From IMG/VR virus record IMGVR_UViG_3300021964_009390, positions 1-64,000 of that record: a stretch of DNA of 64,000 nucleotides, one strand, 5' to 3'. Numbering within the stretch: the first letter of the stretch is position 1; every line of letters starts with the position of its first letter. A program made the translations under genes and the position numbers. The notes beneath the pieces were generated by a model, which was given only the letters and a program-made list of their open reading frames with translations, was not told where the DNA came from and searched no databases. Of this stretch, positions 4,092-59,781 are shown in pieces.

Positions 4092-4149
4092 TTTTATACG
4101 ATGATGAGGTAGCGATACCTGAGTAACAAGGTCAAGGAGAAAACATAAT

Positions 4150-8876: not shown

Positions 8877-8929
8877 ATATGTATATTTATATGTTGATAA
8901 TGCAGCTTCTACATTATATAATATGTTAT

Positions 8930-10537: not shown

Positions 10538-10695
10538 CAATCGAGGAAAATTGATGGTACTGTGTGTACCGTTAAACATGTACATAGCGATACTGTATGC
10601 TACAGCTGGAAGTTATCTCGCAATATTACCGGTATGTGCAGCGGCAATATGTGGCATGGCTACATATAATAAGAAATATCAAATTTACAATACAG

Positions 10696-11064: not shown

Positions 11065-11079
11065 TTTATAATATATACA

Positions 11080-14892: not shown

Positions 14893-16959
14893 ATGAGCCA
14901 ACAAGACATTTATAATTTATCCGACCTATTAACATCTACTGCATCAGAAACTGATTATGGTGCCTTGAATTGGACTGGTACTTTTGACGAATACCTGGAC
15001 ATAGTGAATGAAACTCCAAAAGTAACTAGGAACTCATATCAGCGTATGTATGACATGGTAATGTCCCATGGTACAGAGGAAGTCAATTACTGTAAACAAA
15101 CATATACAAAATATAAATTTTTCGCTAGCGGTAAGGATGGTGACATAAGTATTTACGGTTTGGAAGAACCGTTGATGGAACTTGTAGATGTATTGAGATC
15201 CGCTGCGTATCACTATGGACCAGAGCGCAGAATCATATTGCTGCACGGTCCAGTAGGTAGTAGCAAATCGACGATAGTAACCACATTGAAAAAGGGATTA
15301 GAACAATATTCAATCACCGATCCATTGTATTCATTCACCTGGTGTGTGGAAGATGATAATGGTACACCAGTTGAAGTTCCATGCCCCATGAATGAAGAGC
15401 CATTGAAATTGTTACCGGAAGCCGCTAGGAAGAACATTGTTGAACGTATCAACAATTCACTAGCCAACGATGATTATAGAATCAAACTAGATGGCAATTT
15501 GTCACCAGTGTCCGAGTTTTACAGAGATAAGTTGCTGAAAAAATATAACGGTGATTTTAACAAAGTACTATCACACGTCAAAGTGAGACGTGTTATATTG
15601 TCTGAAAAATCAAGAGTAGGTATAGGAACATTTCAACCGAAAGATGAAAAGAGTCAAGATGCTACTGAATTAACAGGCGACATAAACTACAGAAAGCTAG
15701 CTCAATATGGTAGTGAGAGTGACCCACGTGCTTTTGACTTTGATGGTGAATTTTTGATATCAAACAGAGGCATGGTTGAGTTTCAAGAGATCCTCAAATT
15801 GCAAACAGAGTTTTTGTACGACCTCTTGGGAGCCACGCAAGAGCATCGAGTCAAGCCTAAACGATTCAATCAAGTACCGATAGATGAAGTGATTATAGGT
15901 CACACCAACAACGCAGAATATGACAAGCTGAAAAACAATAAGTTCATGGAGGCTCTACGTGACAGAACCATAAAAATAGATGTACCGTACTTACTGAAAA
16001 TAAATGATGAGAAAAAAATATACGATTATTTCTACAATCAACACACGGTACACAAACACATCGCACCACATACTACATATCTTGCTGCGCTGTATGCAGT
16101 AGTGTCACGTCTAGAAAAACCGGTCAAGAATGACATGAGTATAATCCAAAAAGCAAAATTGTACAACGGAGTTGGTGTACATGGTTTCACAGAAGAACAT
16201 GTCAAGGAGATGTTAGAAGAGACACCTAACGAAGGTTTGTTGTCTGGTGTGAGTGCGCGTTTCATACAGAATCAATTTAGTAACGCTATTGTGAACCCTA
16301 GGATGGGTAAAAAAAGTATCAATCCTTTCATGCTGTTCTCGCAAATACGAGACGGTATCAAAAATTATTCCGGTTTCAACAGCGAGGATCTGCGCGCTGA
16401 AGCGTTAGAAAGATTGGAACTAGTCGAGAAAGAATATGACCGTATAGTGAAAAGAGAGGTACAACAAGCGCTCAGCAGTAGTGAAGAGGCCATCAAAACG
16501 TTGTGTACAAATTATATTGACAACGTTGTTGCTTTTGTAAACGATGAAAAGGTGACCAACCCCATTACTGGTAAAGATGAACCGGCTAATGAAAAGATGA
16601 TGAGATCTATTGAGGAAAAAATAAATGTCTCTACCAATATGAAAGAAGATTTCCGTCGTGAGATCATGAATTATATGGGTTCACTGGCAGCAAAAGGTAA
16701 GTCATTTAAATACGATAGTAACGAGCAATTGCATAAAGCCCTAGAAAAGAAGTTGTTTGAAGATATTAAAGACAGTATCAAACTATCCGCGCTGGCACAA
16801 GACACGGCCACTGTGGTAGACAAGGAGTTACTTGATAAAATCAACGCACTCAAGCAACGACTGGTGAAAGACTTTGGGTATGATGAAGATAGTGCTCATG
16901 ATGTTCTCGTGTATGTGGGGAGTATATTTGCCCGAGGTGACGACGTAGGAGACAAGTAA
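14893..16959 (+). CDS. prkA: PrkA/YeaG family AAA+ serine kinase
   Basis: LLHGPVGSSKST, GELxGDIN..L..YGSESDPRAFDFDGEF..SNRGMVEFQEILK, EALRDR, SGVSARF. Confidence 0.93.
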   Translation: MSQQDIYNLSDLLTSTASETDYGALNWTGTFDEYLDIVNETPKVTRNSYQRMYDMVMSHGTEEVNYCKQTYTKYKFFASGKDGDISIYGLEEPLMELVDVLRSAAYHYGPERRIILLHGPVGSSKSTIVTTLKKGLEQYSITDPLYSFTWCVEDDNGTPVEVPCPMNEEPLKLLPEAARKNIVERINNSLANDDYRIKLDGNLSPVSEFYRDKLLKKYNGDFNKVLSHVKVRRVILSEKSRVGIGTFQPKDEKSQDATELTGDINYRKLAQYGSESDPRAFDFDGEFLISNRGMVEFQEILKLQTEFLYDLLGATQEHRVKPKRFNQVPIDEVIIGHTNNAEYDKLKNNKFMEALRDRTIKIDVPYLLKINDEKKIYDYFYNQHTVHKHIAPHTTYLAALYAVVSRLEKPVKNDMSIIQKAKLYNGVGVHGFTEEHVKEMLEETPNEGLLSGVSARFIQNQFSNAIVNPRMGKKSINPFMLFSQIRDGIKNYSGFNSEDLRAEALERLELVEKEYDRIVKREVQQALSSSEEAIKTLCTNYIDNVVAFVNDEKVTNPITGKDEPANEKMMRSIEEKINVSTNMKEDFRREIMNYMGSLAAKGKSFKYDSNEQLHKALEKKLFEDIKDSIKLSALAQDTATVVDKELLDKINALKQRLVKDFGYDEDSAHDVLVYVGSIFARGDDVGDK

Positions 16960-18083
16960 TGCCCGGTCGCCGGATACGAGAAGATCACAGTGAATATCGT
17001 GATCTAATCAAAGACAAAGTAAAAAGCCGAGTCAAAGATCATATCAAAACCGGTAAAAAAGTCAAACGTCATGGGAAAGACTTGGTTGTTGTAGATATAC
17101 CTGTTATAGATCTACCGTCATTCCGCCATGGGAAAAGTAAATCTGATGGTGGTGTAGGTAACGGTCCAGTGGATGTAGGGGACGAAGTAGGTGATGGTCC
17201 ACAACAACCCGGAAAGGGTCAAGCTGGTGATCAACAAGCGGAGCATACAATGGGTGTAGGTGTTACTGTCGAAGACTATATTGATGTACTAGGTGATGAA
17301 CTAGAATTACCACGTCTAGTACCTAAACTGAGAGGTGATATAATAAATCAAAAGGTCAAATATAACGGTATTAGTCGAGTTGGTAACAATTGTCTGCTAC
17401 ATAAAAAGAAGACATTGAAAAATGCAATGAAACGCGTGATGTCTACCGGGTTATATAATCCTGACAATATATCTAATGTGTACCCAATAACACAAGACAA
17501 GGTATATAAAACATGGAACGTTGTTGACTCACCGGACATAAACGCAGTAGTATTTTTTTTACAGGATATAAGCTGGAGTATGGATGGTGAGAAAAGAGAT
17601 CTAGTAAGAGAACTATGCTGGTATCTGGAACAATGGATAAGAAAATTTTACAATCAAGTCGATTTAAAACATATTGTACACGATGTAGTGGCTCAAGAAG
17701 TTGATCAAGAAAAATTTTACAGTTTTGAAGCTGGAGGTGGTACCAAGATAAGCTCCGCCTTCGAATTGACGTCGGATATTATAGATAGTTCCTACCCGGC
17801 CGAGGATTGGAACATGTATGTCTTTTATTTCTCCGATGGTGAAAATTTTTCAAATGACACTAAGAGATGTATACAGTTATTAGAACAATTGCAAACCAAA
17901 TGCAATTTGATAGGGGTTGGAGAAGTCAAAGGTGTTACGGATTGGGCCGATTTCGCGCTATCAATAGAAGAGGAAATAGACAATAAAGTCCTAGACGAGG
18001 GTGTTATAACCACAAGCTCGATCGATTCACATGATGATGTGTTACGCGCAATTCAAGAATTTTTATCACCGGTTTCACGATGA
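16959..18083 (+). CDS. yeaH: YeaH/YhbH (DUF444) vWA-domain protein
   Basis: Gly-rich linker, MIDAS-like DISWS, GGTKISSA, YFSDGEN; translationally coupled to prkA. Confidence 0.9.
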   Translation: MPGRRIREDHSEYRDLIKDKVKSRVKDHIKTGKKVKRHGKDLVVVDIPVIDLPSFRHGKSKSDGGVGNGPVDVGDEVGDGPQQPGKGQAGDQQAEHTMGVGVTVEDYIDVLGDELELPRLVPKLRGDIINQKVKYNGISRVGNNCLLHKKKTLKNAMKRVMSTGLYNPDNISNVYPITQDKVYKTWNVVDSPDINAVVFFLQDISWSMDGEKRDLVRELCWYLEQWIRKFYNQVDLKHIVHDVVAQEVDQEKFYSFEAGGGTKISSAFELTSDIIDSSYPAEDWNMYVFYFSDGENFSNDTKRCIQLLEQLQTKCNLIGVGEVKGVTDWADFALSIEEEIDNKVLDEGVITTSSIDSHDDVLRAIQEFLSPVSR

Positions 18084-19690
18084 GACGTACAACATCTAGC
18101 AATTTATTACAACAGGGTGTAGGTACCGAGCTAGCCAAGCAAATCCCGGAGATCATTGATGTATGTAAAAAGGAAGGATTGGACCCATACGAACTGGTTA
18201 TTGAAGAATATACTGCTGACGAGATTGCGGAACTAGGAGCCTATGGTGGGTTCCCCGTGAGATACCCACACTTTTCATTTGGTCAGCAATACGAAACATT
18301 ACACCACCAGTATCACAGTGGTATGGGTAAGATATATGAAATGGTTGTGAATAACGATCCTACATACATGTATTTGCAGCGAAACAATCCAATAGTGGAC
18401 AATTTGACAGTTGTCGCTCATGCATTAGCACATTCTGATTTTTTTAAAAATAATATATACTTTGGTAACACCAACCGAAACATGATGAATGTGATGGCTA
18501 ACCATGGTCAAAAAATCCGGCAGTATATGAATATATACGGTAAATCTCGAGTGTCTAAATTTTTAGATGCCTGTTTGTCTGTCGATGATTTAATAGACCC
18601 GAACATTGTGTGGTCGGATCAACAATATAACAAACCTACAATAACGGAATTTGCACCACCGATAGAACAATTCACTCCGAAGCGTATAGGTACCAATCAT
18701 TACATGGACCATTATGTGAATACAGCCAAATTTTTAGAGAAGCAGCATAAATCACATTTGAGACAAAAAGCTCGCGCAGACAGTAAATATCCTTTGAAAC
18801 CAGTGAAAGACATACTGTTGTTCATACTACAACATGTCCGAATGGAACGCTGGCAGCAAAACATATTATCCATGGTACGTGACGAGAGCATCTATTTCCG
18901 TCCGCAAATGTTGACAAAAGTGTTAAACGAAGGTTGGGCTAGTTACTGGGATAGTTACATCATGACCAAATGTGGTTACGCAGGTGATGAAGGTATAATA
19001 CAATACGCGCAACACCATTCAGGGGTGTTAGGTGGTAAATATGCAATGAGTAACCCGTACAGATTGGGTAACTGTTTGCTCCGTCATGTGGAGGATCGAT
19101 GGAACAAAGGGCAGTTCGGCCGGGCATGGGACAACTGTGATGACGAATTCAAAAGAAAATCATGGGACACTAAAGCTAGTCAAGGTCGCGACAAAATATT
19201 TGAAGTTCGTCGCGATTATAATGACGTTAATTTTATAAACGAATTTTTTACACCGGAATTTTGTGACGAGCATGAATATTTTGAATACCAATTGGACCCG
19301 GAAACAAACAAATACGTGGTTGTGAGCAAGGATTATGACAAAATTAAATCTAAATTGCTGCAACGTTACACGAATGGTGGTCGCCCTAGTATAGTGCTCA
19401 CAAATTTTGACAAGTCTGGTATAGAATTGAGACATCGGTATGAAGGCATGGAACTAGAGAGTAATTATGTTGAAAGTACCATGAAGATGTTGTATAATAT
19501 TATAAATATGCCAATTGTATTGAAATCCAAAGCGTATGTATCTAAAAAGAAAAAGGTATATGGTGCAGTGTTTGCTGTCGCGGAAGAGGAAGAAGAACTA
19601 TGTGGTCGTGTGTTTAAATATGATGGTAAGACGTTCAAGTCATGGGAAGACTACAAACAACGTGACTTTCCCAACTACCAAATTACATGA
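18080..19690 (+). CDS. spoVR: SpoVR/YcgB family protein
   Basis: GGFPVRYPHFSFG, IYEMVVNNDP, AHALAHSDFFKNN, TKVLNEGWASYW, NPYRLG. Confidence 0.93.
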   Translation: MRRTTSSNLLQQGVGTELAKQIPEIIDVCKKEGLDPYELVIEEYTADEIAELGAYGGFPVRYPHFSFGQQYETLHHQYHSGMGKIYEMVVNNDPTYMYLQRNNPIVDNLTVVAHALAHSDFFKNNIYFGNTNRNMMNVMANHGQKIRQYMNIYGKSRVSKFLDACLSVDDLIDPNIVWSDQQYNKPTITEFAPPIEQFTPKRIGTNHYMDHYVNTAKFLEKQHKSHLRQKARADSKYPLKPVKDILLFILQHVRMERWQQNILSMVRDESIYFRPQMLTKVLNEGWASYWDSYIMTKCGYAGDEGIIQYAQHHSGVLGGKYAMSNPYRLGNCLLRHVEDRWNKGQFGRAWDNCDDEFKRKSWDTKASQGRDKIFEVRRDYNDVNFINEFFTPEFCDEHEYFEYQLDPETNKYVVVSKDYDKIKSKLLQRYTNGGRPSIVLTNFDKSGIELRHRYEGMELESNYVESTMKMLYNIINMPIVLKSKAYVSKKKKVYGAVFAVAEEEEELCGRVFKYDGKTFKSWEDYKQRDFPNYQIT

Positions 19691-32276: not shown

Positions 32277-32660
32277 GGGCCTGTAAAGGATTCGACGTTC
32301 ATTGACAGTTAACAACCGCAAGTGAGAGAGATGCCTGGCTCTCTAAAAAGGCATACCCGCATACTTGGCGATATTCAAGATGCTAAGCGTGGTGTTCAAG
32401 AGGTCCTTCACGGGATCTTCTCCGAGCAGCCCGCTCTCTTGGCAGCTTAAGCTGTCACGTGTCACCCCGGATGCTCGATAAGGGAGTGATGCGTCAACAT
32501 CGAGCAAGCACCAGATATGTTGTCTGTTGATGACTGGTGTTGAAACTCAAATCGAAACAGGATAGGAGGTCTGCAGCCGAGAACAGTAGACTAAACTTGT
32601 GAACGAGGTGTTAACCAGAGATGTTAACGGACGCCGGTTCGACTCCGGCCAGGTCCACCA
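32277..32660 (+). ncRNA. ssrA: tmRNA (transfer-messenger RNA), 384 nt
   Basis: 5' GGGCCTG pairs with 3' CAGGTCC-ACCA, including the G3:U alanine determinant. Also GGATTCGAC, the T-arm GCCGG-TTCGACT-CCGGC, pseudoknot 1 (GAGAGAG/CTCTCT with ATGCCT/AGGCAT), and a tag ORF ending ALLAA-TAA. Confidence 0.95.
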
Positions 32661-43407: not shown

Positions 43408-44124
43408 ATGGAGTACAACCCGAAACATCGCAGAAGAACTAGAGAAACAAAAGCATACAACAACAACACTTTTCTGAACAGCAGAGAGGCTCGAAACATC
43501 CGCGTACAATGCGAGGTGATGGAACCGGGAATGAGACTAGATCGGCTAGGAGTTGACAACATGATCACATTTTTCGGAAGCGCCAGAACCAAACCAAACC
43601 ACCCGGATTATATAGACGCGTACAAACTAGCGTACAAACTAGGTACATGGACCAAAAAACATGCACCTACCACAGGTATATCCAGCGGCGGTGGTCCGGG
43701 TATAATGGAAGCCACAAACAAAGGTGCATATGACAGTGGTGCCAAAAGCATAGGGATGGGTATCAGTCTCCCGTTCGAACAGCACAATAACGAATATATC
43801 TCACCTGATTTGGATTTTGAATTCCATTACTTTTTCACTCGCAAATACTGGTGTGTATATTTGAGCAAGGCATATGTGATGATGCCCGGTGGAGTAGGTA
43901 CCATGGACGAGCTGTTCGAGGTGTTGACACTGATACAGACACAAAAAATAAAACAACCCAAACCTATTGTTTTATATAATACAGACTTTTGGAAAAAAAC
44001 TGTGAATTTCTCCCGTATGATTGACCAGGGTACAATAGGTGAGGACGATCTAGAGTTGTTCGAGTATCACGATGACACGCAGACTGCATATGATTATATT
44101 GTCTCAAACATACATTTGACATAA
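43408..44124 (+). CDS. LOG family (TIGR00730-like) nucleotide monophosphate phosphoribohydrolase
   Basis: FFGSART, SGGGPGIMEA, FFTRK, PGGVGTMDELFE. Confidence 0.92.
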   Translation: MEYNPKHRRRTRETKAYNNNTFLNSREARNIRVQCEVMEPGMRLDRLGVDNMITFFGSARTKPNHPDYIDAYKLAYKLGTWTKKHAPTTGISSGGGPGIMEATNKGAYDSGAKSIGMGISLPFEQHNNEYISPDLDFEFHYFFTRKYWCVYLSKAYVMMPGGVGTMDELFEVLTLIQTQKIKQPKPIVLYNTDFWKKTVNFSRMIDQGTIGEDDLELFEYHDDTQTAYDYIVSNIHLT

Positions 44125-46948: not shown

Positions 46949-47602
46949 ATGAATAAGATAAATATAGCTAATATATATACAGTAACAGACTCCTTTGAAC
47001 TGAAATTGGCTGAATACACAGGAGCAAAATATGCTATATGTGTAGATAACATGAGTAACGCATTATTTTTGTCACTATATTATGAAAAACATGTAAAAAA
47101 ATCTTGTGAGGACTTTATAACTATACCTAGTAGAACATATCCTTCGGTCCCGTGTGAAATTATACATGCGGGATTAAAAGTGAAATTTAAACAAGTCGCC
47201 GGTGAAACGTTAACAGGGGCATATCTACTTGAGGGGAGCAATGTATGGGATTCAGCTTTACGGTTTACTGCGGATATGTATAAACCTAAATCACATATGT
47301 GTATATCATTCACCGGTCCGTATAAACACTTCAAATTAAGCAAAGGAGGAGCAATACTTACTGATTCATCAGAAGCAAATAATTGGTTCCGGAGAGCGAG
47401 GTACAGTGGTCGGAGAGAGTGTTCATATCACGAGGATAATTTTGACATGACTGGCTGGAACTACTATATGATGCCAGAACTTGCAGCGCGTGGATTATTG
47501 TTGATGAGCCAATTTTACACCCATGATGGTAAAAAAATAGATAATGACGATTTGACCCTCCCGTACCCTGACCTGAGCAAGTACCCGATATACACGACAT
47601 AA
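46949..47602 (+). CDS. DegT/DnrJ/EryC1/StrS-family PLP sugar aminotransferase, short form
   Basis: FELKLAEYTGAKYA, TYPSVP, WDSA, SFTGPYKH (PLP Lys), GWNYYM. Confidence 0.75.
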   Translation: MNKINIANIYTVTDSFELKLAEYTGAKYAICVDNMSNALFLSLYYEKHVKKSCEDFITIPSRTYPSVPCEIIHAGLKVKFKQVAGETLTGAYLLEGSNVWDSALRFTADMYKPKSHMCISFTGPYKHFKLSKGGAILTDSSEANNWFRRARYSGRRECSYHEDNFDMTGWNYYMMPELAARGLLLMSQFYTHDGKKIDNDDLTLPYPDLSKYPIYTT

Positions 47603-47619
47603 TTATTACAATTTGCAAT

Positions 47620-48243
47620 ATGAAAAATTATAAATATACAAAACAATGGTTCACATCTAAAGATTTAGAGCAGTTTTTAAAAATCGACCGGGAGAAAGAA
47701 TTGCATATTCTTGAAATTGGCTCATTTGAAGGTGAAAGTACAGTCTGGTTTCTTAACAATGTACTCCAACATTCAAAATCTACTATCACATGTATAGACC
47801 CGTGGGACAGTTATTCGCAGAATAGCAAAAGCTTTCAAAGTTACTCCAACCCAGAAAATGAATGGCATAATAGTGATAAGTATGACACATTCAAGCATAA
47901 TATAAAAGAGTCTGGGGTTGAAGAAAAGGTTTTAGTTAAAAGAGGATTATCTCATGAAATTTTACCGGAATTGCTTGTTGAGAACAACCAATATGACATC
48001 GTCTTTATAGATGGTAACCATGTAGCCCCATATGTACTAACAGACGCCATGTTTAGCTGGTACATGCTAAAAGATCGTGGGATAATGATATTTGATGATT
48101 ACTTGTGGAGACCTCAGCTTAATAAAGTCTTGACACCAAAACTGGCTGTAGATTCGTTTATAACCAACTTTCAAGATTATTGTGAGGTAATTTACGATGG
48201 CTACCGCAAGGCCATTAAAAAGGTAATGAGTGACAATGAATAA
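47620..48243 (+). CDS. Class I SAM methyltransferase (Methyltransf_24-like)
   Basis: LEIGSFEGEST, YDIVFIDGNH, IMIFDDYLW. Confidence 0.9.
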   Translation: MKNYKYTKQWFTSKDLEQFLKIDREKELHILEIGSFEGESTVWFLNNVLQHSKSTITCIDPWDSYSQNSKSFQSYSNPENEWHNSDKYDTFKHNIKESGVEEKVLVKRGLSHEILPELLVENNQYDIVFIDGNHVAPYVLTDAMFSWYMLKDRGIMIFDDYLWRPQLNKVLTPKLAVDSFITNFQDYCEVIYDGYRKAIKKVMSDNE

Positions 48244-48934
48244 AAAAACACTCATACTAACTGACAATTTACAAGCATACAAGCTAGCGGGTGAACTCAA
48301 CCAGTTGCACGGCGGTATTGATACATATCAATCACCTAATGGTACTATAGAAGGTATACCACATTTACATGTTCGAGATCAAGTAACATCAATTATTGAC
48401 AAATATGACCTTGTCTTATCTATACATTGCAAACAGATTTTCCCAGACGAACTAGTTATCGGTTCACGATGTGTAAATGTACATCCCGGGCTGAACCCAT
48501 ATAATAGAGGTTGGTTTCCACAGGTCTTTTCAATTATTAACGGTCTTCCCAGTGGGGTAACCATTCATGAAATTGATAACGAACTGGACCATGGACCGAT
48601 AATCGCTCAGAAGGAATACACAATACAACCCTGGGACACATCCGGGTCAGCATATGCGAAAATTATAGCTCTTGAAAAAGAATTGCTAATGGAACATTTT
48701 ACATCGATCAGAAATCGTACTTACAAGGCTATACCACCAGAAGAAGAAGGTAATCTCAATTATAAAAAAGATTTTAATAAGTTGAAACATATTGACATGA
48801 ACCAGCAAGGTACATTTGGTGAGTTCATAAACCGGCTCCGTGCACTCACTCATGATAATTATAACAACGCCTATTATATAGAACCTTCCGGTAAAAAGGT
48901 TTTTGTTAAACTCCAACTAGAGTTGGAAGGTTAA
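48230..48934 (+). CDS. dTDP-4-amino-4,6-dideoxyglucose formyltransferase (VioF/Rv3404c-like)
   Basis: LSIHCKQIFP, CVNVHPGLNPYNRGWFPQVFSI, GVTIHEID.ELDHGPII. Confidence 0.85.
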   Translation: MTMNKKTLILTDNLQAYKLAGELNQLHGGIDTYQSPNGTIEGIPHLHVRDQVTSIIDKYDLVLSIHCKQIFPDELVIGSRCVNVHPGLNPYNRGWFPQVFSIINGLPSGVTIHEIDNELDHGPIIAQKEYTIQPWDTSGSAYAKIIALEKELLMEHFTSIRNRTYKAIPPEEEGNLNYKKDFNKLKHIDMNQQGTFGEFINRLRALTHDNYNNAYYIEPSGKKVFVKLQLELEG

Positions 48935-49003: not shown

Positions 49004-51052
49004 ATGAAAATAATACACCATGTCACTATGTGGGCCATGTCAGTAGGTACAGTTACCGGTGGAGAGTTGTGGTTCAACAACGGAAAAATGCTAGAAGGAG
49101 AAATACTAGAAGCGAACAACACTCACGTACTGTTCGCGCGCGCGTCCGATCTACAACAATTCAGATTCAGCAAAGAGCTACTGACACTAGACAGTCAAAA
49201 ATTAATAGAGCTATATTATAACACAAACAGATATGGTGAAATTCCACAGGTCAAAACACCGTTAGACGATCGAACATTACAAATCTACACCAATCGTATA
49301 GATCAATTGATCGAGAACCGTTTGAGAGGCCTGAAAAAGAGACCCACTGCAAAAGCTGATGATAATACATGGGTGAGAAGGGTGTATTTGACCACGATTG
49401 GTCGTATACCCAATAGACAAGAGGTCGCGGAGTATCTGAACGATAGAGACTCTCAAAAGAGGGACAAACTGATACAGAAGCTGCTGTCTGGTCCCGGTCA
49501 TGTGACACATCAATTGAACTGGCTGAGCGATTTGTTACGAGTCAAAGATCGTCTGGACGGAGTCAACATAAACGTAGGTGGTGTATACAGGGAATGGCTC
49601 CGACAGCAATTGCAAAACAATGTACCGTGGGACCAGTTTGTGAGAAGTTTGTTGGATAGTGAGGGTGATTTATTCGGTAACAATCCGGCCGCCGGTTATT
49701 ATCTACGAGACAGAGGCATGCAACAAGACAACATAGCGCACACTGTACAAATATTTTTAGGTACACGTCTCGAATGCGCCATGTGTCACAACCACCCGTT
49801 CGACAGATGGACACAAAAAGAGTTTTACGAGATGACCGCATTCACTAGCGGTGTTGGGGGAGTGACTAGAAGCGCTAGGAGGCAACCGTTGAGAGATTTG
49901 AATAGAATGATAAGCAGAGATGGTACACCCCTTGCAGGTAAGTTACAAAATTGGAGAAACGTAGTGAGAGATTCTATACAGTTTGGTGTAGACACAAACG
50001 GTACTGGTAAAATAAAATTGACAGATGAGTTTATGGAAAATGATGCCAAGCCAGGCGACACACTACATGCTAAAGCCATGTTCACACCACATACCTACAT
50101 AGACCCTGAGGATAAAAACCCTAGAAGTCTCACCATACTGGCAAAATGGTTGACTGATCGGAACAACCCGCGGTTCACCACCGTGATAGCCAATAGATTG
50201 TGGAAGAACGTATTTGGTGTAGGTGTAATAGAACCAGTCGACAATTTTATGGATAGCACCATCCCGGAAAACACAGACCTCATGTGGTTTATTGAAAGAA
50301 TATTAGTTAGTGTCAATTATGACATGAGAGAATTCCAACGAGTGTTGTTGAATACCAAGCTGTTCTCTAGAGAGAGCAAACCGACTGATTACGAGAGTCT
50401 GGAAACTTATGATTTTTCTGGACCAGTGTTACGTCGAATGACCGGTGAGCAACTATGGGATTCATTGGTCACTCTAGTATACAACAACATAGACACGAGT
50501 GACAGAGTGTACATACAAAATCAGTCTGCTGTGTATGTGAACATATACAACAAGTACAAGGATTGGAACGGTACAGCCATATATCAAGACCTGGTTCGGA
50601 TAGCTCAAGCCAACCCAGATCAGAGACGGTTGGAAGATTCATTCAAACAAGAGTCTAGCGACGTGAAACCGATACCAGACAGAGGTCTGATTCGAAGCAG
50701 CTATTTGTCGTATCCAGCACCAGGGGGTCACTTGATAAGGCAGTTTGGTGGTAGTGATAAATTGGCAATTGAGAACAGCAACAGTGAACCAAACACAACA
50801 CAAGTGTTAAACTTGTTGAACGGATTTGTAGAGAAAAATATATTGAACAACAAAAAGGCGGATTTTATCAAAAGCATGCAAGCTGAGAAAAACTCGGTCA
50901 AGCAAATTGAAGATGTGTACATGTCTGTGTTGGCACGTAAACCAACCAGTCAAGAGTTACGTGAGCTGAAAGATATACTAAAAGAAGAGAATGGATACAA
51001 ACACGTCGCATGGATATTGCTCAACACCCACGAGTTTATGTTTATACAGTAA
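49004..51052 (+). CDS. DUF1549/DUF1553 (PSD1/PSD2) protein with N-terminal signal and SHD1-like domain
   Basis: ADD.TWVRRVYL..IGRIP, FLGTRLECAMCHNHPFDRWTQKEFY, NPRFTTVIANRLW, RRMTGEQLWDS, QVL.LLN, W.LLNT.EF.F. Confidence 0.9.
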   Translation: MKIIHHVTMWAMSVGTVTGGELWFNNGKMLEGEILEANNTHVLFARASDLQQFRFSKELLTLDSQKLIELYYNTNRYGEIPQVKTPLDDRTLQIYTNRIDQLIENRLRGLKKRPTAKADDNTWVRRVYLTTIGRIPNRQEVAEYLNDRDSQKRDKLIQKLLSGPGHVTHQLNWLSDLLRVKDRLDGVNINVGGVYREWLRQQLQNNVPWDQFVRSLLDSEGDLFGNNPAAGYYLRDRGMQQDNIAHTVQIFLGTRLECAMCHNHPFDRWTQKEFYEMTAFTSGVGGVTRSARRQPLRDLNRMISRDGTPLAGKLQNWRNVVRDSIQFGVDTNGTGKIKLTDEFMENDAKPGDTLHAKAMFTPHTYIDPEDKNPRSLTILAKWLTDRNNPRFTTVIANRLWKNVFGVGVIEPVDNFMDSTIPENTDLMWFIERILVSVNYDMREFQRVLLNTKLFSRESKPTDYESLETYDFSGPVLRRMTGEQLWDSLVTLVYNNIDTSDRVYIQNQSAVYVNIYNKYKDWNGTAIYQDLVRIAQANPDQRRLEDSFKQESSDVKPIPDRGLIRSSYLSYPAPGGHLIRQFGGSDKLAIENSNSEPNTTQVLNLLNGFVEKNILNNKKADFIKSMQAEKNSVKQIEDVYMSVLARKPTSQELRELKDILKEENGYKHVAWILLNTHEFMFIQ

Positions 51053-51071: not shown

Positions 51072-51497
51072 ATGAAAAAACACGACAGTATAGATGCATC
51101 AATATTAAAAACATTACCTAACCCAACCACTGGTGCATATGAAATTAAAATAAAAATCCCAGAATTTACATTTTTAGGGGTCAAAGAACAACCGGATTTC
51201 GCAGATACATACCTGAGTTTTTACCCTAAAGACAAAATAATTGAGTTGAAAAGCCTTAAACAATATGTGTACCAATTGAGAGATATTGTTGTTTCATACG
51301 AGAGGTTGATTAATGTATTTTACGATCACGTAATGGGTGTTTATCAGCCTGAGAGACTTAGGGTTGTAATGGTGTTTAACCCGCGTGGTGGTATAACATC
51401 GAAATTGACTATAGATTCTGATTGGTCAGTCAGAGGCGGTGAAGAAAAATTTAAAGACTGGACTAACAAAAACGAACAGTGGAACATAACACTATAA
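51072..51497 (+). CDS. QueF type I-fold protein lacking the catalytic Cys
   Basis: LPNP..YEI.I..PEFTFLGVKEQPDFA..ELKSLK.Y....SYE..RGGI. The canonical CP..G.PDF is replaced. Confidence 0.75.
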   Translation: MKKHDSIDASILKTLPNPTTGAYEIKIKIPEFTFLGVKEQPDFADTYLSFYPKDKIIELKSLKQYVYQLRDIVVSYERLINVFYDHVMGVYQPERLRVVMVFNPRGGITSKLTIDSDWSVRGGEEKFKDWTNKNEQWNITL

Positions 51498-51505
51498 TAG
51501 TGTAA

Positions 51506-51907
51506 ATGGATAAAGATCTCCCGGATAATGTAGCGCCGAACCCACACTCACTACCATATGCGAGTAATATAGGTGCACCAGTAATTAAACCGGACCATAG
51601 TATCACTGGATGGAAGCATGGAGCAGTACACTCAGCTAACAAACACTACCAGGACCGGTTTGATGAATTGAAAAAACAATTCGAACAGCTAGCAGAAGAT
51701 TTTAAATGGAACGATATAATGTTCAACGCCGATTTTCGCTTGAAGCCAGTTATAGGTAACACATATTATTTGTACAAGAGACCCAGTCAGAACAAACACT
51801 ACATATCGTTGTTCGCCCCGCAGGAACGTGTTGGAGGATATGACAACTATGTAGGCGCTTTCCGCTTAAACTATGACAACAGGTGGGAAAAAATTACAAA
51901 TGATTAG
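51506..51907 (+). CDS. DUF2452-like protein
   Basis: LPYASNIGAP.I, F...PVIG.TYYLY.R, G.FRLN.D..W. Confidence 0.65.
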   Translation: MDKDLPDNVAPNPHSLPYASNIGAPVIKPDHSITGWKHGAVHSANKHYQDRFDELKKQFEQLAEDFKWNDIMFNADFRLKPVIGNTYYLYKRPSQNKHYISLFAPQERVGGYDNYVGAFRLNYDNRWEKITND

Positions 51908-52874
51908 CTAGCAATCTACGTGCTTGTTTCTCTTCATGCTCAATCATAAGATTGATCGCGTAGTCTTTTTGTTTGAGTTCGATGTCCCAGTCAATATGCA
52001 TGTTCTCTGTATAGAAACTCTCGTGTTTGTGTCGCCACAACGCTGGTGAATCAATAGCAAAATCTGTATGGGCTCGTGGGTTACCATTGGCACCACCCTC
52101 ACTGTAATGAAACAATGGATTCACATCATGAGCTTTCCATGTACTAGCACACACTCGGAACGCCTCTTTAGCGCCCCACGTACCTGGGTTACATGCATGA
52201 TGCAAGTTGTCAAATGTGATGGGTATACCAGTCTCTAGATGGATCAGCTCGAACAACATGTCGGGTGTCCATAGACCTTTGTCTTCGTTCTCTAGCACTA
52301 GCCGAGATTTGACTCGATCCGGAAGCTTGTGGTAGTTAGTTATGAATTCAGCAGCTATAGTTTCTGCATCACCGGTACTGCGACTCATGTGTATATTCAA
52401 GGGATACCAGTAAGATCTACTGTGTTCACCTGCCATACGATCCAGCAGCCATGCATGATGGTCCAACTCATTTATGGTGCGTCTCACAACTTCTGGATTG
52501 GCGCTACACAACACATTGAAATGATCCGGATGAAAACTGACACGAAAATCTTTGGGAGACTGTCTGGTCACAAAATGTTGTATCTCTGCAAACTTGTCGT
52601 CAATCAACGTGGCGTTAGGTAGGTCTCGTAAACCAACGTTGGCTTTGTCAAGATTGAACAACGGAAACAGCGTGCTACTGATTCGATAACCCCAGCCGTT
52701 ACTGAGCGCGAACCGCATGGTTTCGAGAGTGGTTGTGAGATTCTCTAGTGCACGTTCTCCTAGGATCTCTAGAGCATCCACACGTTCATGTTTCTCGAAC
52801 TGAGTGAATCTGAACGCGCGATGGTTAAATCCTTGTTTTTTTAACGCTAAACTAATGCAACATAGGTTATACAT
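51894..52874 (-). CDS. uvsE: UV damage endonuclease
   Basis: YRISS.LFP, RVSFHPDHFNVL.S, LNIH, RLVLENED, TFDNLHH, HYSE. Confidence 0.9.
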   Translation of the reverse strand: MYNLCCISLALKKQGFNHRAFRFTQFEKHERVDALEILGERALENLTTTLETMRFALSNGWGYRISSTLFPLFNLDKANVGLRDLPNATLIDDKFAEIQHFVTRQSPKDFRVSFHPDHFNVLCSANPEVVRRTINELDHHAWLLDRMAGEHSRSYWYPLNIHMSRSTGDAETIAAEFITNYHKLPDRVKSRLVLENEDKGLWTPDMLFELIHLETGIPITFDNLHHACNPGTWGAKEAFRVCASTWKAHDVNPLFHYSEGGANGNPRAHTDFAIDSPALWRHKHESFYTENMHIDWDIELKQKDYAINLMIEHEEKQARRLLANHL

Positions 52875-52887
52875 AATAAATAAGTAT

Positions 52888-53418
52888 ATGAGCATAAACC
52901 AAGACACGCAACTAATATGGGAGAATTACAACTATTCATTCGACAAAGATTCCATGATAAATCACGCGGTAAAAATGCACCAGAAACATGGTGCTGGGAT
53001 TGACGAGATAAAAGAAACATTGATGGCTGCGGCGATGTCCGGTGGTCCGGAACAAGCACATCATGTGGCGCAGTATTTAAAAAGTGATGAATTCACTAAC
53101 GAACTTAAAAATCGTTTACAGTCTCTAGATGATGAGATGATGCACGAGGAGCTTGACCGAGGAGACGAAGCTGGTGATTATACTGCGTTTTTGAAGGAGA
53201 TGGCACGAGAGCTGGTGAGAAACGACATGCCGGAGGAGGAAGCAATGGAAATTGTGTTGAGTCATCCATTTGAAGAAACATACGGTGAATATTTGAGAGT
53301 CAGAGGAGCAGCCGGTGTATACACAGCCGCTCAAAAGCACAAAGAACTAGCGGAAAAGTCCGGATATTACCATGAGGTTGACATGAACATGTTACAAAAT
53401 TGGAAGTATGTTAGCTAG
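52888..53418 (+). CDS. Putative virion protein (DTQLIWENY N-terminus)
   Basis: Late motif 5 nt upstream. Confidence 0.6.
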   Translation: MSINQDTQLIWENYNYSFDKDSMINHAVKMHQKHGAGIDEIKETLMAAAMSGGPEQAHHVAQYLKSDEFTNELKNRLQSLDDEMMHEELDRGDEAGDYTAFLKEMARELVRNDMPEEEAMEIVLSHPFEETYGEYLRVRGAAGVYTAAQKHKELAEKSGYYHEVDMNMLQNWKYVS

Positions 53419-54383
53419 TCTATATAATATTTAATTGTACTTTCTAACAGCTCATCAAAATTAGCGCTTGAAGACCAACCAAGTTCAGTCTTCAATTTGT
53501 TACAATCAACCGCGTACCGGTAGTCATGCCCCTTACGATCCGTTACAAATGTAATTTGCTGTTTATATGACATACCATCTTGTTTAGGTCTCAATCTATC
53601 TAGCAACCCACATATTTTGCTCACAAGGTCAATGTTACTCATCTCATGATCACCTCCAATATTATATGTTTCCCCGGTCAAACCTTTACGAAAGACCAGC
53701 TCGATGGCTCGGCAATGGTCTAATACATACAACCAGTCTCGTATGTTTTTACCGTCACCATACACTGGTATATTCCCACCTGTTAACGCGGTTTTCACCA
53801 CTGTAGGTATCAATTTTTCTACATGTTGATGGGGTCCAAAATTGTTACTACAACTGGTGATGACTGTGTCAATTCCATATGTACGTTGATAACTACGCAC
53901 CATCAAACCACCACTCGCTTTGCTGGCGCTGTAAGGGCTGTTAGGCGCAACTGGTGTATCCTCTGTGAACATACCTGTGTCACCTAAAGTACCATATACT
54001 TCATCGGTACTTACATAGTGAAACCTACCGGTACAATATTTCCGGAATGCTTCTAGTAACACTCCTGTACCATTCACATTTGTGGTGACAAATTGCAAAG
54101 GGTCTTCGATAGAGTTATCCACGTGACTCTCAGCCGCTAGATGTATGATAGAATCTATACCGTACTGTTGGATGGTGTATTCAACTTGCTGAGCATTGCA
54201 TATGTCACCTTTGACAAATGTGTATCTACCATTCAATTTGACTGAATCTAAATTGCTCAAGTCTCCTGCGTATGTCAGCTTGTCATAATTAACAAACCAC
54301 ATGTCATTACTATTGTTGATCAAATGCAATATCAAATTACTACCAATAAAACCGCACCCTCCAGTGATTAAAACATGTTTCAT
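53415..54383 (-). CDS. rmlB: dTDP-glucose 4,6-dehydratase
   Basis: ITGGCGFIGSN, DKLTYAG, HLAAESHVD, VSTDEVYG, YSASKAS, YGDG.NIRDWLYV, DRKGHD.RY. Confidence 0.95.
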   Translation of the reverse strand: MKHVLITGGCGFIGSNLILHLINNSNDMWFVNYDKLTYAGDLSNLDSVKLNGRYTFVKGDICNAQQVEYTIQQYGIDSIIHLAAESHVDNSIEDPLQFVTTNVNGTGVLLEAFRKYCTGRFHYVSTDEVYGTLGDTGMFTEDTPVAPNSPYSASKASGGLMVRSYQRTYGIDTVITSCSNNFGPHQHVEKLIPTVVKTALTGGNIPVYGDGKNIRDWLYVLDHCRAIELVFRKGLTGETYNIGGDHEMSNIDLVSKICGLLDRLRPKQDGMSYKQQITFVTDRKGHDYRYAVDCNKLKTELGWSSSANFDELLESTIKYYID

Positions 54384-54396
54384 AATAAATATATGT

Positions 54397-54918
54397 ATGT
54401 TAGAACGATTCGATAATCTATATGAAAAGCACCTTCCGGAGGAAAAAAAGAAAGGTTTAGACGGCAAAGCATGTTGGAAAGGATATCGACAACAGGGCAC
54501 CAAAAAGAAGGGTAACAAAACTGTCGACAACTGCGTGAAGGTCGGTGAGGGTTTATGGGCCAATATAAACAAGAAAAATAAGTCCGGTCGTAAATCAGCC
54601 AGCAAAGGAAGCAAAGCCTACAAAGCCGCTGTCAAAGCCGGAGACAAGCTAGAAGCCACCAAGGAAAGTATTGCTGCTGAGAAAAATGCACAATGCACTG
54701 GACCTACTAAAAAAGCCAGTAGCACCAGCAAAGGTAAAAAATGGATGAAATGTGTGAAAAGTGACAGCGGTGGTTACAAACGTATACACTGGGGTCAAAA
54801 AGGAGTCAAAGTGAGCGGCAAAGCAAACACCAAAAGACGTAAAAGCTTCAGAGCTCGTCACAAATGTAGCACGGCCAAAAGCAACACACCACGCGGACAA
54901 GCATGCAAGGACTGGTAG
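54397..54918 (+). CDS. Basic modular putative virion protein
   Basis: CWKGY..GTKKKG..VDNCV and GLWANIN modules; Lys-rich. Confidence 0.65.
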   Translation: MLERFDNLYEKHLPEEKKKGLDGKACWKGYRQQGTKKKGNKTVDNCVKVGEGLWANINKKNKSGRKSASKGSKAYKAAVKAGDKLEATKESIAAEKNAQCTGPTKKASSTSKGKKWMKCVKSDSGGYKRIHWGQKGVKVSGKANTKRRKSFRARHKCSTAKSNTPRGQACKDW

Positions 54919-58512: not shown

Positions 58513-59781
58513 ATGAATGATTTAAGCCGCCGCGAATTTGTAAGTACAGTTGCCAAAAGCTGTTTAGGAGTGAGCGCCATACTGAGCGCTCAAGATTTAT
58601 TAGCAATCAAACCCACCGGGCAGATACCAACCGCTCGGAATGTTATATTTTTATACATGGCAGGAGGCATGACTCACATCGACACGTTCGACCCAAAACC
58701 GGAGAACAGTGACGTGATGGGTGAAACAACTGCCATTGACACTACAGCGGACGGGGTACAGATAGGCAACTGGTTACCCAACACCGCCAAACAGATGCAC
58801 AACGCAAGTTTGATACGTACATTGTCGTCCAATCAAGGTGCACATGCACAAGCCAACTATTTGTTACACACCAGCTACCAACGCCGCGGCACGATCGTGC
58901 ATCCAACCATGGGTGCATGGGTGAGCAAACAGACACCCAAACTGAATCGATCGTTACCATCTAACGTGAGAATCAACGGAGGTAGCGACATATTAGGTTC
59001 CGGTTATTTGGAGAAAAAACACGGACCGTTACCATTGGGTAACCCCAACGCAGGTATACAAAATGTGTCACAGGCCAAGTATCTGGACGAGACCATGTAC
59101 AACAAACGGATGGACATATCCAGCAAATTCAACAAAAATTTCTTAGACATGTTCCCACAAAAGCAAGTACGTGCATACACTGATTTATATGATGATGCCA
59201 TCCGGTTGATGAAAAGCACAGATCTTGAAGCGTTCGATCTGACAAAAGAAGACCAAGCCACTCGAGACATGTACGGTACCAACAGTTTTGGTCAGGGCTG
59301 CCTATTAGCTAGACGGTTGGTTGAGACTGGTGTACGTTATGTCGAGGTGCAGCTAGGTGGTTGGGACATGCACAACGATGTGTTTGGTAACATGGAGACA
59401 CGAGGTGCTACATTGGACAATGGATTGGCTTCGTTGTTACAAGATTTGAACCGTCGTGGTCTGTTGAGCTCCACACTAGTTGTTGTGGCGAGTGAATTTG
59501 GTCGTACACCAGAGGTCAAAGCAGGCCGCGTGGGACGTGACCATCACCCATCTGCATTCAGCGCCATGTTGGCCGGAGGAGGAGTCAAAGGAGGTTACGT
59601 ACATGGCAAGAGCGACAAGCGTGGTCACTATGTAGAAGAGAAAGGTGTGAAAATGGAAGATCTGAACGCCACGATTGCTTACATGATGGGAATGGACATC
59701 ACTGAAACAATCTATTCTCCAAGTGGCAGACCATTTAAAATTGCTAATGCGGGTGAGGTTGTAACTGACATTTTAGCATAA
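58513..59781 (+). CDS. DUF1501 protein with twin-arginine (Tat) signal
   Basis: LSRREFV, VIFLYMAGGMTHIDTFDPKP, FGQGCLLARRLVETGV..VEV..GGWD.H, SEFGRTP, GRDHHP, GGGVKGG..G.SD. Confidence 0.93.
   Translation: MNDLSRREFVSTVAKSCLGVSAILSAQDLLAIKPTGQIPTARNVIFLYMAGGMTHIDTFDPKPENSDVMGETTAIDTTADGVQIGNWLPNTAKQMHNASLIRTLSSNQGAHAQANYLLHTSYQRRGTIVHPTMGAWVSKQTPKLNRSLPSNVRINGGSDILGSGYLEKKHGPLPLGNPNAGIQNVSQAKYLDETMYNKRMDISSKFNKNFLDMFPQKQVRAYTDLYDDAIRLMKSTDLEAFDLTKEDQATRDMYGTNSFGQGCLLARRLVETGVRYVEVQLGGWDMHNDVFGNMETRGATLDNGLASLLQDLNRRGLLSSTLVVVASEFGRTPEVKAGRVGRDHHPSAFSAMLAGGGVKGGYVHGKSDKRGHYVEEKGVKMEDLNATIAYMMGMDITETIYSPSGRPFKIANAGEVVTDILA

Follow-up and report, generated by a model that had tools for sequence, protein, structure and literature searches.

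The nitrile reductase QueF (preQ1 synthase, EC 1.7.1.13) reduces preQ0 to preQ1 by way of a thioimide formed with preQ0 by a catalytic cysteine, Cys55 in the unimodular (YkvM type) enzyme of B. subtilis (PDB 4F8B/4FGC). Asp62 serves as proton relay, Glu78 binds N9-H of preQ0, Glu97 anchors N1/N2 of the base (PMC13740343), and the QueF motif, E(S/L)K(S/A)hK(L/Y)(Y/F/W), is linked to NADPH binding (PMC13740343; PMC5699537). The QueF-Like (QueF-L) archaeosine synthase of Crenarchaeota (PDB 5K0P/5JYX), a QueF-derived unimodular T-fold paralogue with a changed reaction, acts on preQ0-tRNA, keeps the catalytic Cys and forms the thioimide but has lost the NADPH site (PMC5699537). GTP cyclohydrolase I (FolE) and other pterin-binding T-fold enzymes share the fold and the conserved Glu that anchors the 2-amino-4-oxo-pyrimidine ring of pterins and purines; FolE has Zn-binding Cys/His residues and lacks the QueF motif (PMC5699537). 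In phages, DpdL of Cellulophaga phage phiST, a paralogue of QueD that has lost its catalytic Cys and is a proposed CDG decarboxylase, provides a precedent for a T-fold paralogue of a queuosine enzyme whose reaction is thought to have changed (PMC10516641). DpdL, however, belongs to the Zn-dependent QueD/PTPS family and is confined to deazaguanine clusters.

The stretch of DNA analysed here, hereafter called the window, consists of positions 1 to 64,000 of the IMG/VR record IMGVR_UViG_3300021964_009390 and is the start of the genome of a 222-kb T4-like estuarine/marine phage. The original prediction, that the open reading frame at 51072-51497 (+) encodes a second QueF-fold protein without the catalytic cysteine, was confirmed. 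The ORF corresponds to 141 amino acids (P0001) with no cysteine at any position. The start codon at 51072 fits the 141-aa length of nearly all close homologues, whereas the longer alternative, an ATG at 50991, overlaps the upstream gene. The protein matched Pfam QueF (PF14489) with an E value of 6e-18, but scored 86.0 bits against TIGR03139, the preQ1 synthase equivalog, just under the cut-off of 86.9. An AF2 model (pLDDT 89.4) had B. subtilis QueF (4fgc/4f8b) as its best PDB match (Foldseek, TM about 0.75, E 2e-10), with about 30 % sequence identity. QueF-L (TM 0.57-0.61, sequence identity only about 13-14 %), FolE and the GCH1-GFRP complex also appeared among the fold matches. No Pfam GTP_cyclohydroI match was found, a Zn-binding Cys/His set is not possible in a protein without Cys, and the PHROG label 'GTP cyclohydrolase' is only the name of the QueF phrog.

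In the alignment to 4f8b, residues 30-43 (PEFTFLGVKEQPDF; 51159-51200, +) contain Gly36 in the place of Cys55, followed by a loop which is one residue shorter, and Asp42, corresponding to Asp62. Residues 58-65, ELKSLKQY (51243-51266, +), make up the QueF motif, including Glu58 (Glu78), Lys80, Ser81 and Lys83 of B. subtilis QueF also being kept. In residues 75-78, SYER (51294-51305, +), Glu77 (Glu97) is kept, while Ser75, Tyr76 and Arg78 replace Phe95, His96 and Asp98. Residues 105-107, RGG (51384-51392, +), are shared with canonical QueF, as are the PE.T...QPDF segment and the motif E-L-K-S-h-K-x-Y. The protein is thus the opposite case to QueF-L, the Cys being lost and the NADPH motif kept. 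The intact QueF at 11621-12535 (+) is bimodular (QueF_N + QueF), with SNCRVTSQPDW and FHE.

Gly was found at position 36 in 59 of 59 Cys-less representatives, compared with Cys in 43 of 43 canonical ones, and Asp42 was invariant in both groups. The diagnostic changes are Cys to Gly, Ser/Cys54 to Phe34, Phe95 to Ser75, residue 98 to Arg and the 1-aa loop deletion. Tyr at the position of His96, which had been listed among the changes in the original prediction, is not diagnostic, since 18 of the 43 canonical Cys-bearing representatives also have Tyr there. Ser75, Tyr76 and Arg78 are nevertheless near-invariant in the Cys-less group, Glu77 is invariant, and E58, K60, S61 and K63 are 90-100 % conserved. 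Twelve columns were invariant across 47 sequences down to 32 % identity. The group is defined here by the motifs [PE]E-x-T-F-x-G-x3-Q-P-D-F, E-L-K-S-x-K-x-Y, S-Y-E-R and R-G-G (alignment A1) and by monophyly, the split from canonical QueF having 100 % SH-aLRT support, and the phage protein fulfils these criteria. Of the best 150 representatives of 50 %-identity clusters, 74 carried the Cys-less pattern. A search returned 1721 relatives at 90 % clustering, and all 120 hits listed carried the Cys-less motifs or near variants of them. The dN/dS ratio among phage copies was 0.04-0.13, with saturated dS. The possibility of a rare degenerate allele under relaxed selection, which had been set beforehand as the refuting condition, is clearly not supported by these data. 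Literature searches found no description of this Cys-less family. The gene belongs to a large, strongly conserved but uncharacterised sister family of QueF in which the cysteine has been lost and the NADPH motif retained.

Proteins 64-81 % identical to the phage protein are chromosomal genes of free-living bacteria, the loci of named genomes including Bacteroidota, Pseudomonadota and a Nitrospirota MAG. Cultured carriers include Natronoflexus pectinivorans DSM 24179, Aliikangiella marina, Chitinophaga hostae and Marinoscillum. Roughly 135 loci were examined for their gene neighbourhoods. In 11 of 46 non-redundant groups with adequate flanks, the gene lies between the Hcy-domain gene and the pterin-B12-AdoMet gene of a split metH, overlapping the upstream gene by 11 nt, and this was also the case in both randomly drawn Bacteroidota carriers (genomes G203 and G219). 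A SAM-I riboswitch (67-90 bits) precedes the operon in 11 of 16 loci scanned, and also in locus L032. In locus L034 it lies directly in front of the QueF-like gene, which leads a metY-like/hom operon; metB/metY-hom operons behind a SAM riboswitch are a recurrent context. The thymidylate synthase gene thyX lies immediately upstream and co-directional in seven loci, forming three non-redundant groups, and MTHFR is adjacent in loci L011 and L151. However, 22 of the 46 non-redundant contexts, for example those of Marinilabiliaceae and Aliikangiella, show none of these neighbours. Rfam searches found no riboswitch upstream of the stand-alone copies in Marinilabiliaceae or Aliikangiella, and the apparent 540-nt 'intergenic' conservation there is the 5' end of the divergent methyltransferase gene. 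No bacterial copy examined lies next to a queuosine, tgt or transporter gene.

Of five carrier genomes, G003, G004 and G005 have no true QueC and no canonical QueF, although they keep QueA and so must salvage a precursor, whereas G001 and G002 contain the preQ0 pathway. Two carriers other than G003, G004 and G005 have the dimeric bimodular QueF. MTHFR, DHFR and FolD were present in every carrier genome tested, so the gene does not fill an obvious pathway hole, and the reading that it is a non-orthologous replacement of a core folate enzyme was rejected.

The phage sequences form a clade (99 % support) nested among the bacterial ones and sister to the Cytophagales copies from split metH operons, though the latter with only 82 % support. 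No close relative was found by DNA among deposited phages, and by protein only canonical QueFs with 27-37 % identity were found. The phage encodes FolE, QueD, QueE, QueC, QueF, DpdA and DpdN. The DpdA (DNA guanine transglycosylase; 8810-9730, +) was missed by the Pfam TGT profile but is 44 % identical (blastp E 3e-67) to the DpdA of Flavobacterium phage immuto, which is assigned to subfamily DpdA3 (PMC10516641). It is followed by a DpdN-like formyltransferase (9727-10272, +), a proposed folate-dependent preQ1/dPreQ1 formylase, with 44 % identity (E 3e-52) to the immuto enzyme named DpdN (PMC10516641). A region at 10597-11637 (+), identified with PHROGs, contains a dATP/dGTP pyrophosphohydrolase gene (10597-11064) and an AAA_28/thymidylate-kinase-like gene (11080-11637), leading into the intact QueF, which is 49 % identical to immuto QueF. 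The gene order is the same as in immuto and in a related phage locus, L052. The related phage immuto replaces all G by formyl-preQ1 (PMC10516641). The DpdA-DpdN-QueF cluster predicts formyl-preQ1 DNA. A sugar N-formyltransferase (Formyl_trans_N + N_formyltrans_C; 48230-48934, +), a second folate-dependent enzyme, is encoded 2 kb upstream of the QueF-like gene. The phage has no MetH, MTHFR, ThyA, ThyX or DHFR of its own. Canonical QueF was not found in five related IMG/VR contigs, but these are only 16-64 % complete.

The original interpretation was partly supported. A neofunctionalised QueF/T-fold paralogue, not a broken allele, is supported, the family forming a conserved clade under strong purifying selection, and of the functions that had been suggested, a different purine/pterin reaction fits best, whereas sequestering of the host queuosine precursor or poisoning of host QueF oligomers is not supported. 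The fold match, the conserved and altered residues, the monophyly and selection, the bacterial gene contexts, the occurrence in genomes without QueC and canonical QueF, and the gene content of the phage were shown by the analysis. NADPH binding, the ligand, the reaction, including the absence of preQ0 reduction, and the role in the phage are inferred, the ligand and the reaction from residue conservation and gene neighbourhoods only.

With moderate confidence at most, the family is read as having given up covalent catalysis while keeping the T-fold pocket for a 2-amino-4-oxo-pyrimidine heterocycle (Glu77, Glu58), the Asp42 proton relay and the NADPH-linked motif, and as belonging in bacteria to folate one-carbon/methionine metabolism. 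In this view, the phage lineage captured the gene once, probably from a Cytophagales-like Bacteroidota host, where it lies inside a SAM-riboswitch-controlled split metH operon, and keeps it as an auxiliary metabolic gene. The most likely mechanism would be NADPH-dependent hydride transfer to, or tight binding of, a reduced pterin or folate, with the target atom in the place of the nitrile carbon of preQ0, that is the carbon carried on N5 (5,10-methenyl/methylene-THF type) or the C6=N5 bond of a 7,8-dihydropterin. No cysteine would be needed, because such a substrate is already an imine/iminium, like the intermediate of the second half-reaction of QueF. In the phage the protein would support the one-carbon supply for two folate-dependent formyltransferases, DpdN acting on preQ1-DNA and the sugar N-formyltransferase. 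The same Glu/Glu/Asp set is, however, what QueF uses for preQ0, so residue conservation alone cannot separate a pterin from a deazaguanine. The stronger proposal, that the QueF T-fold has given rise to a previously unrecognised class of cysteine-independent, NADPH-dependent folate/pterin oxidoreductases, SAM-riboswitch regulated in Bacteroidota and other bacteria and used by marine T4-like phages with DUF2452 to sustain the one-carbon supply for folate-dependent formylation of preQ1-substituted DNA, is not excluded but remains doubtful.

Where a source names proteins of this family, it usually calls them 'preQ(1) synthase' or '7-cyano-7-deazaguanine reductase'. Judged from the missing cysteine, they should be unable to perform the cysteine-dependent reaction, so queuosine-pathway reconstructions that rely on these names would be wrong for those genomes and phages. 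The position of the gene in the SAM-riboswitch methionine regulon, literally inside metH, and in thyX operons points to an unknown accessory step or factor in folate one-carbon metabolism, a pathway thought to be essentially complete. In phages it offers a testable link between 7-deazaguanine DNA hypermodification, which needs a formyl donor, and auxiliary one-carbon genes.

A role in 7-deazaguanine metabolism is possible but less likely. The protein would bind or convert preQ0, preQ1, CDG or an aldehyde/imine analogue without covalent catalysis, feeding or diversifying the DpdA/DpdN modification in the phage and serving salvage in bacteria. All QueF residues that recognise the deazaguanine ring (Glu97, Glu78, Val77 and backbone contacts) and Asp62 are kept, the phage encodes the whole preQ1 pathway, the carriers without QueC and QueF must salvage a precursor, and the new Ser/Tyr/Arg triad around the C7-substituent site could, by inference, hold an oxygenated or anionic group such as a carboxylate. 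In L052 the order is dNTP-PPase, AAA_28, QueF, QueF-like, DUF2452, which would equally fit such a role, but this is the only phage relative with adjacency to QueF. The recurrent bacterial partners are instead metH halves, metB/metY, hom, MTHFR, thyX and SAM riboswitches, and immuto makes formyl-preQ1 DNA without this gene.

Somewhat less likely still is a non-catalytic T-fold oligomer acting as ligand sensor, regulator or scaffold, which could for example assemble or regulate the split methionine synthase in bacteria and act with DUF2452 in phages, much as GFRP regulates the GTP cyclohydrolase I decamer. The insertion exactly at the Hcy/folate domain boundary of metH with overlapping reading frames, the very high conservation, typical of proteins constrained by several interfaces, and the existence of T-fold decamers with small protein regulators are in agreement with this. 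Retention of the Asp proton relay and the whole NADPH motif argues for chemistry, and the gene also occurs without metH, beside thyX, or alone.

An anti-host function, by sequestering host preQ0/preQ1 or forming mixed and therefore dead oligomers with host QueF, is very unlikely: although the unimodular fold with an intact base pocket formally resembles the C55A mutant that still binds preQ0 (4fgc), close homologues are resident bacterial genes under SAM-riboswitch control, some carriers have no QueF, the phage itself needs preQ1 for its DpdA/DpdN pathway, and the clade-specific residues indicate a positive function. A decaying QueF duplicate, suggested only by the lost Cys and the TIGR03139 score just below cut-off, is refuted by the selection, abundance, monophyly and invariant columns given above.

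In phages the QueF-like gene is nearly always followed by a DUF2452 gene (PF10504, the family of the uncharacterised human protein C1orf50; 51506-51907, +; Pfam E 1e-11), here 8 nt downstream. The two were adjacent in phage loci L041-L043 and L047-L053 and in 31 of 80 metagenome loci, the metagenome scan being made with alignment A4, as A1 was too diverse. A UV-damage endonuclease gene, UvdE (51894-52907, −), is convergent and a recurrent neighbour in related phages. The AF2 model of DUF2452 has a conserved but disordered N-terminus, suggesting a docking peptide, a long helix and a small beta domain. Foldseek found nothing significant for it in the PDB, and a wider structural search (VIA) found only long-helix matches at Z ≤ 4.6. 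A predicted complex of the two proteins gave an ipSAE of 0.00, which is evidence neither for nor against binding. DUF2452 was present in 31 of 301 Bacteroidota and in two of five carrier genomes tested (G203 and G219, but not G001, G002 or G004), which is only suggestive. The phage pairing offers a first functional handle on a domain conserved up to humans. The bacterial DUF2452 neighbours are heterogeneous (CcmF, MoaC, dNK, PdxJ and methylmalonyl-CoA mutase).

A search for expression data found no RNA run containing the locus. The only domain fusions of the QueF-like family found, a Lar_restr_allev fusion and a chimeric FliM, were uninformative. Of the divergent members, P0123, P0127, P0129 and P0130 lie on short contigs and say little about context, whereas P0161 lies between dapA/dapB-type genes and a PALP enzyme.

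The open reading frame at window 51072-51497 (+) translates to 141 amino acids (protein P0001) and matches the Pfam QueF family (PF14489, E 6e-18), whereas its score against the unimodular preQ1 synthase equivalog TIGR03139, 86.0 bits, is just under the cut-off of 86.9. The AlphaFold2 model (pLDDT 89.4) superposes on B. subtilis QueF (4fgc/4f8b) with a TM of about 0.75 and E 2e-10. The sequence was aligned to B. subtilis QueF and read against the residue roles compiled in a 2026 review (PMC13740343). The catalytic nucleophile Cys55 is replaced by Gly36, and the following loop is one residue shorter. The proton relay Asp62 is kept as Asp42, and Val77, Glu78 and Ser79, which contact N2, N9 and N3, respectively, correspond to Ile57, Glu58 and Leu59. 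Lys80, Ser81 and Lys83 of the QueF motif are kept (ELKSLKQY), as is the shared segment Arg125-Gly-Gly. Phe95, His96, Glu97 and Asp98, located around the base and its C7 substituent, correspond to Ser75, Tyr76, Glu77 and Arg78. The protein contains no cysteine at all, whereas the QueF encoded at 11621-12535 is an intact bimodular enzyme with its Cys, Asp and His-Glu. The original prediction, which described a second QueF-fold protein lacking the catalytic cysteine in addition to an intact QueF at 11621, was therefore correct in what it observed. It requires one refinement, since Tyr in place of His96 also occurs in 18 of 43 canonical QueF representatives and the Y of SYE is thus not diagnostic. 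The diagnostic changes are Cys to Gly, residue 54 to Phe, Phe95 to Ser, residue 98 to Arg and the loop deletion.

A word-indexed search found 1721 relatives, of which the 120 best (69-89 % identical) carry PEFTFLGV..QPDF, ELKSLK and VSYERL, or near variants of these motifs. An exhaustive search of 50 %-identity representatives found 1185 clusters at E<=1e-3, and among the best 150 of these, 74 carry the Cys-less pattern, 43 the canonical Cys pattern, and 33 are fragments or unclear. In an alignment of 47 Cys-less members reaching down to 32 % identity, E31, G36, Q40, D42, K63, S75, Y76, E77, P93, R105, G106 and G107 are invariant, and T33, F34, P41, E58, L59, K60, S61, Y65, R70 and R78 are at least 90 % conserved. 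A maximum-likelihood tree separates the Cys-less clade from canonical QueF with 100 % SH-aLRT support. Pairwise dN/dS among phage copies is 0.04-0.13, with dS near or beyond saturation. A rare degenerate allele under relaxed selection, which had been named beforehand as the finding that would refute the original prediction, is therefore not what was found.

The sequence is the first 64 kb of a 222,461-bp IMG/VR record. It has a T4-type major capsid protein at 4150-5706, only about 33 % identical to those of cyanomyophages, and the DNA recurs in estuary and marine metagenomes from several studies, although no RNA run contained it. The phage encodes a full preQ1 pathway, with QueE at 147010-147894 (-), QueD at 147818-148525 (-), FolE at 152277-152921 and QueC at 171139-171849 of the record. 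QueC is followed by a separate class-II glutamine amidotransferase gene (both within 171139-172522 of contig G000:C1, the phage record, or 8890-10273 of the extracted locus L091), an arrangement which resembles a split version of Gat-QueC, the enzyme linked to archaeosine-type (dG+) modification, suggesting the possibility that the phage makes more than one deazaguanine derivative.

A search with the Pfam TGT profile found nothing and missed the DpdA. Comparison with Flavobacterium phage immuto identified window 8810-9730 as DpdA (44 % identity, E 3e-67) and window 9727-10272 as the DpdN-type formyltransferase (44 % identity, E 3e-52). These are followed by a dATP/dGTP pyrophosphohydrolase (10597-11064), an AAA_28/Tmk-like gene (11080-11637) and bimodular QueF (11621-12535), in the same order as in immuto. 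In immuto every G is replaced by 7-(formylamino)methyl-7-deazaguanine (formyl-preQ1), its DpdA belongs to subfamily DpdA3, and DpdN is proposed to use a folate formyl donor (PMC10516641). The canonical QueF at 11621 thus belongs to a DNA-hypermodification cluster.

Other genes in the window include sugar-modification genes at 46949-48934 and 53415-54614, encoding a DegT-type aminotransferase fragment, a methyltransferase, a sugar N-formyltransferase (Formyl_trans_N + N_formyltrans_C, 48230-48934) and a dTDP-glucose 4,6-dehydratase-like protein, which suggest synthesis of a formamido-deoxy sugar. PSCyt2/PSD1 (DUF1549/DUF1553) and DUF1501 proteins of unknown function are encoded at 49004-51052 and 58513-59781; such pairs are typical of Planctomycetota and Verrucomicrobiota. 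ARAGORN predicts a tmRNA gene at 32277-32660, with a 27-residue tag peptide ending in ALLAA. A PrkA/DUF444/SpoVR triad on the + strand and a ClpB-like double AAA+ chaperone (820 amino acids) on the - strand, at 14893-19690 and 5766-8228, are both host-like genes of the stress-response type, and a LOG/'possible lysine decarboxylase' (SLOG) family protein is encoded at 43408-44124.

In every T4-like relative with enough flanking sequence, the Cys-less gene is followed by a DUF2452 gene, the two being either directly adjacent or separated by a small PQ-loop gene, often with UvdE nearby. The inserted gene, seen in some related phages (L050/L051, 5426-5692), encodes an 88-amino-acid PQ-loop-like membrane protein, recognised by a weak Pfam hit. 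The pair was present in 31 of the 80 best metagenome loci. In one 120-kb relative (L052) the order is dNTP-PPase, AAA_28, bimodular QueF, QueF-like and DUF2452. In the window the pair is separated by 8 nt, and the gene upstream of the pair differs between relatives.

Copies with 64-81 % identity occur in Bacteroidota (Marinilabiliaceae, Crocinitomicaceae, Chitinophagaceae and Flavobacteriales), in Gammaproteobacteria (Aliikangiella and a Pseudomonadales MAG) and in a Nitrospirota MAG, and copies with 72-75 % identity in a Cytophagales MAG lineage and in Marinoscillum. The gene is rare, being found in 3 of 301 sampled Bacteroidota genomes. The commonest arrangement is a sandwich inside a split methionine synthase, in which an Hcy-binding S-methyltransferase gene (about 332 amino acids) is followed by the QueF-like gene, overlapping it by 11 nt, and then by a Pterin_bind + B12-binding + Met_synt_B12 gene (about 885 amino acids). 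MTHFR follows in Marinoscillum and in bacterial locus L151. Both randomly drawn Bacteroidota carriers (genomes G203 and G219) show this sandwich. In the bacterial loci of this type (L007-L011, L021, L029, L031, L035, L060, L061 and L148-L185) the QueF-like gene is usually inserted exactly at the domain boundary, but in L159, where metH is also split, it is divergent instead of inserted.

About 135 loci were grouped at 90 % identity of the QueF-like protein, giving 63 groups, of which 46 had at least 1.2 kb of flank on each side. Of these 46, 11 showed the split metH, 8 DUF2452 (phage; one also beside bimodular QueF), 3 thyX immediately upstream and co-directional, 2 metB/metY-hom, and 22 none of these contexts. 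The thyX arrangement occurs in 7 loci and has a short gap: in L186, one such locus, ThyX is at 3231-3974 and the QueF-like gene at 4001-4423. In one bacterial group (L174, L178, L182) the genes downstream of the QueF-like gene encode a rhodanese-domain protein and a TusA-DsrE fusion (sulfur relay), a possible further sulfur/methionine-related context.

An Rfam search found a SAM-I riboswitch (67-90 bits) at the head of the operon in 11 of 16 loci scanned, plus L032. It lies before the Hcy-domain gene in L007, L011, L021, L035, L060, L061, L151 and L153, before metB, followed by the QueF-like gene and hom, in L032 and L179, and directly before the QueF-like gene in L034, where this gene leads a metY-like/349-amino-acid/hom operon. 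No riboswitch was found in front of the thyX loci or the stand-alone copies.

Of five carrier genomes examined for queuosine genes, Natronoflexus (G001) and Aliikangiella (G002) also have a bimodular QueF and QueC, whereas Chitinophaga hostae (G003), Marinoscillum (G004) and the Nitrospirota MAG (G005) have neither a canonical QueF nor a true QueC, although they have QueA. The gene therefore does not depend on endogenous preQ0 synthesis. MTHFR, DHFR and FolD are present in all carriers tested, so it is not a replacement for those enzymes either.

In the tree, the seven phage copies form one clade (99 %) nested within the bacterial crown group, with the Cytophagales split-metH copies as sister group, though only with 82 % support. 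This fits a single capture from a Bacteroidota host, and agrees with the similarity of DpdA, DpdN and QueF to those of a Flavobacterium phage.

The family is closest to unimodular QueF, but lacks its defining feature, the catalytic Cys, falls below the curated cut-off and does not show the pathway association. It is the mirror image of archaeal QueF-L, which keeps the Cys and loses the NADPH site, and it resembles DpdL, a QueD paralogue with its Cys replaced, only as a precedent. Full-text literature searches found no paper describing the family, and where a source names its members, the names are 'preQ(1) synthase', '7-cyano-7-deazaguanine reductase' or 'hypothetical protein'. It is a real, conserved and apparently uncharacterised QueF-derived family.

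The analysis established the QueF fold, the loss of the nucleophile, the retention of the heterocycle-anchoring Glu pair, the Asp and the NADPH-linked motif, the clade-specific invariants around the place where the nitrile of preQ0 would sit, the strong purifying selection, the membership of SAM-riboswitch methionine operons and thyX operons in bacteria, the independence from QueC/QueF, and the strict pairing with DUF2452 in the T4-like phages. The ligand and the reaction, by contrast, are inferred. The ligand would be a reduced pterin/folate rather than preQ0, since T-fold pockets bind either (PMC5699537) and every recurrent bacterial partner (MetH, MTHFR, ThyX) handles a tetrahydrofolate one-carbon unit. 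Geometrically, N5 of a pterin sits where C7 of 7-deazaguanine sits, and the carbon carried on N5, or the C6=N5 bond, would then take the place of the nitrile carbon that receives hydride in QueF. Such substrates are already imines or iminium ions, like the intermediate of the second half-reaction of QueF, which would explain why the cysteine is dispensable while the Asp and the NADPH motif are kept. The candidate activities, which the present data do not separate, are methenyl/methylene-THF interconversion, dihydropterin/dihydrofolate reduction, or reduction of the N5-iminium form of methylene-THF, and a binding or regulatory role remains possible. On this evidence the protein is probably a folate/pterin-directed accessory protein of one-carbon and methionine metabolism that phages use as an auxiliary gene, its specific reaction being left undefined. 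The interpretation in the original prediction, a neofunctionalised T-fold protein that may bind preQ0/preQ1, sequester the host queuosine precursor, poison host QueF oligomers or catalyse a different purine/pterin reaction, was partly supported: a neofunctionalised paralogue is supported and a different purine/pterin reaction fits best among the options, whereas sequestering the host precursor or poisoning host QueF is not supported. In the phage, which lacks MetH, MTHFR, ThyA, ThyX and DHFR, the plausible benefit is support of the one-carbon pool, which would be drained by DpdN, on the order of 90,000 formyl groups per genome copy if all G are modified (about 40 % G+C), and also by the sugar N-formyltransferase at 48230-48934.

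The DUF2452 protein of the phage matches PF10504 (E 1e-11), the family of the human protein C1orf50, whose function is unknown. Its model has a highly conserved but disordered N-terminus, a 43-residue helix and a small beta domain, and gave no significant structural match. A structure prediction of its complex with the QueF-like protein returned no verdict on interaction. The word-indexed search found 376 relatives of the DUF2452 protein, mostly on short or phage-sized contigs (longest 230 kb), only one of which carries a taxon label, a Flavobacteriia MAG, and Atlas clusters of the family are labelled mainly Uroviricota or Bacteroidota. A homologue with 36 % identity occurs in a 735-kb uncultured megaphage (LR756501.1, 476428-476712; locus L089), without a QueF-like gene within 6 kb on either side, and DUF2452 was found in 31 of 301 Bacteroidota genomes.
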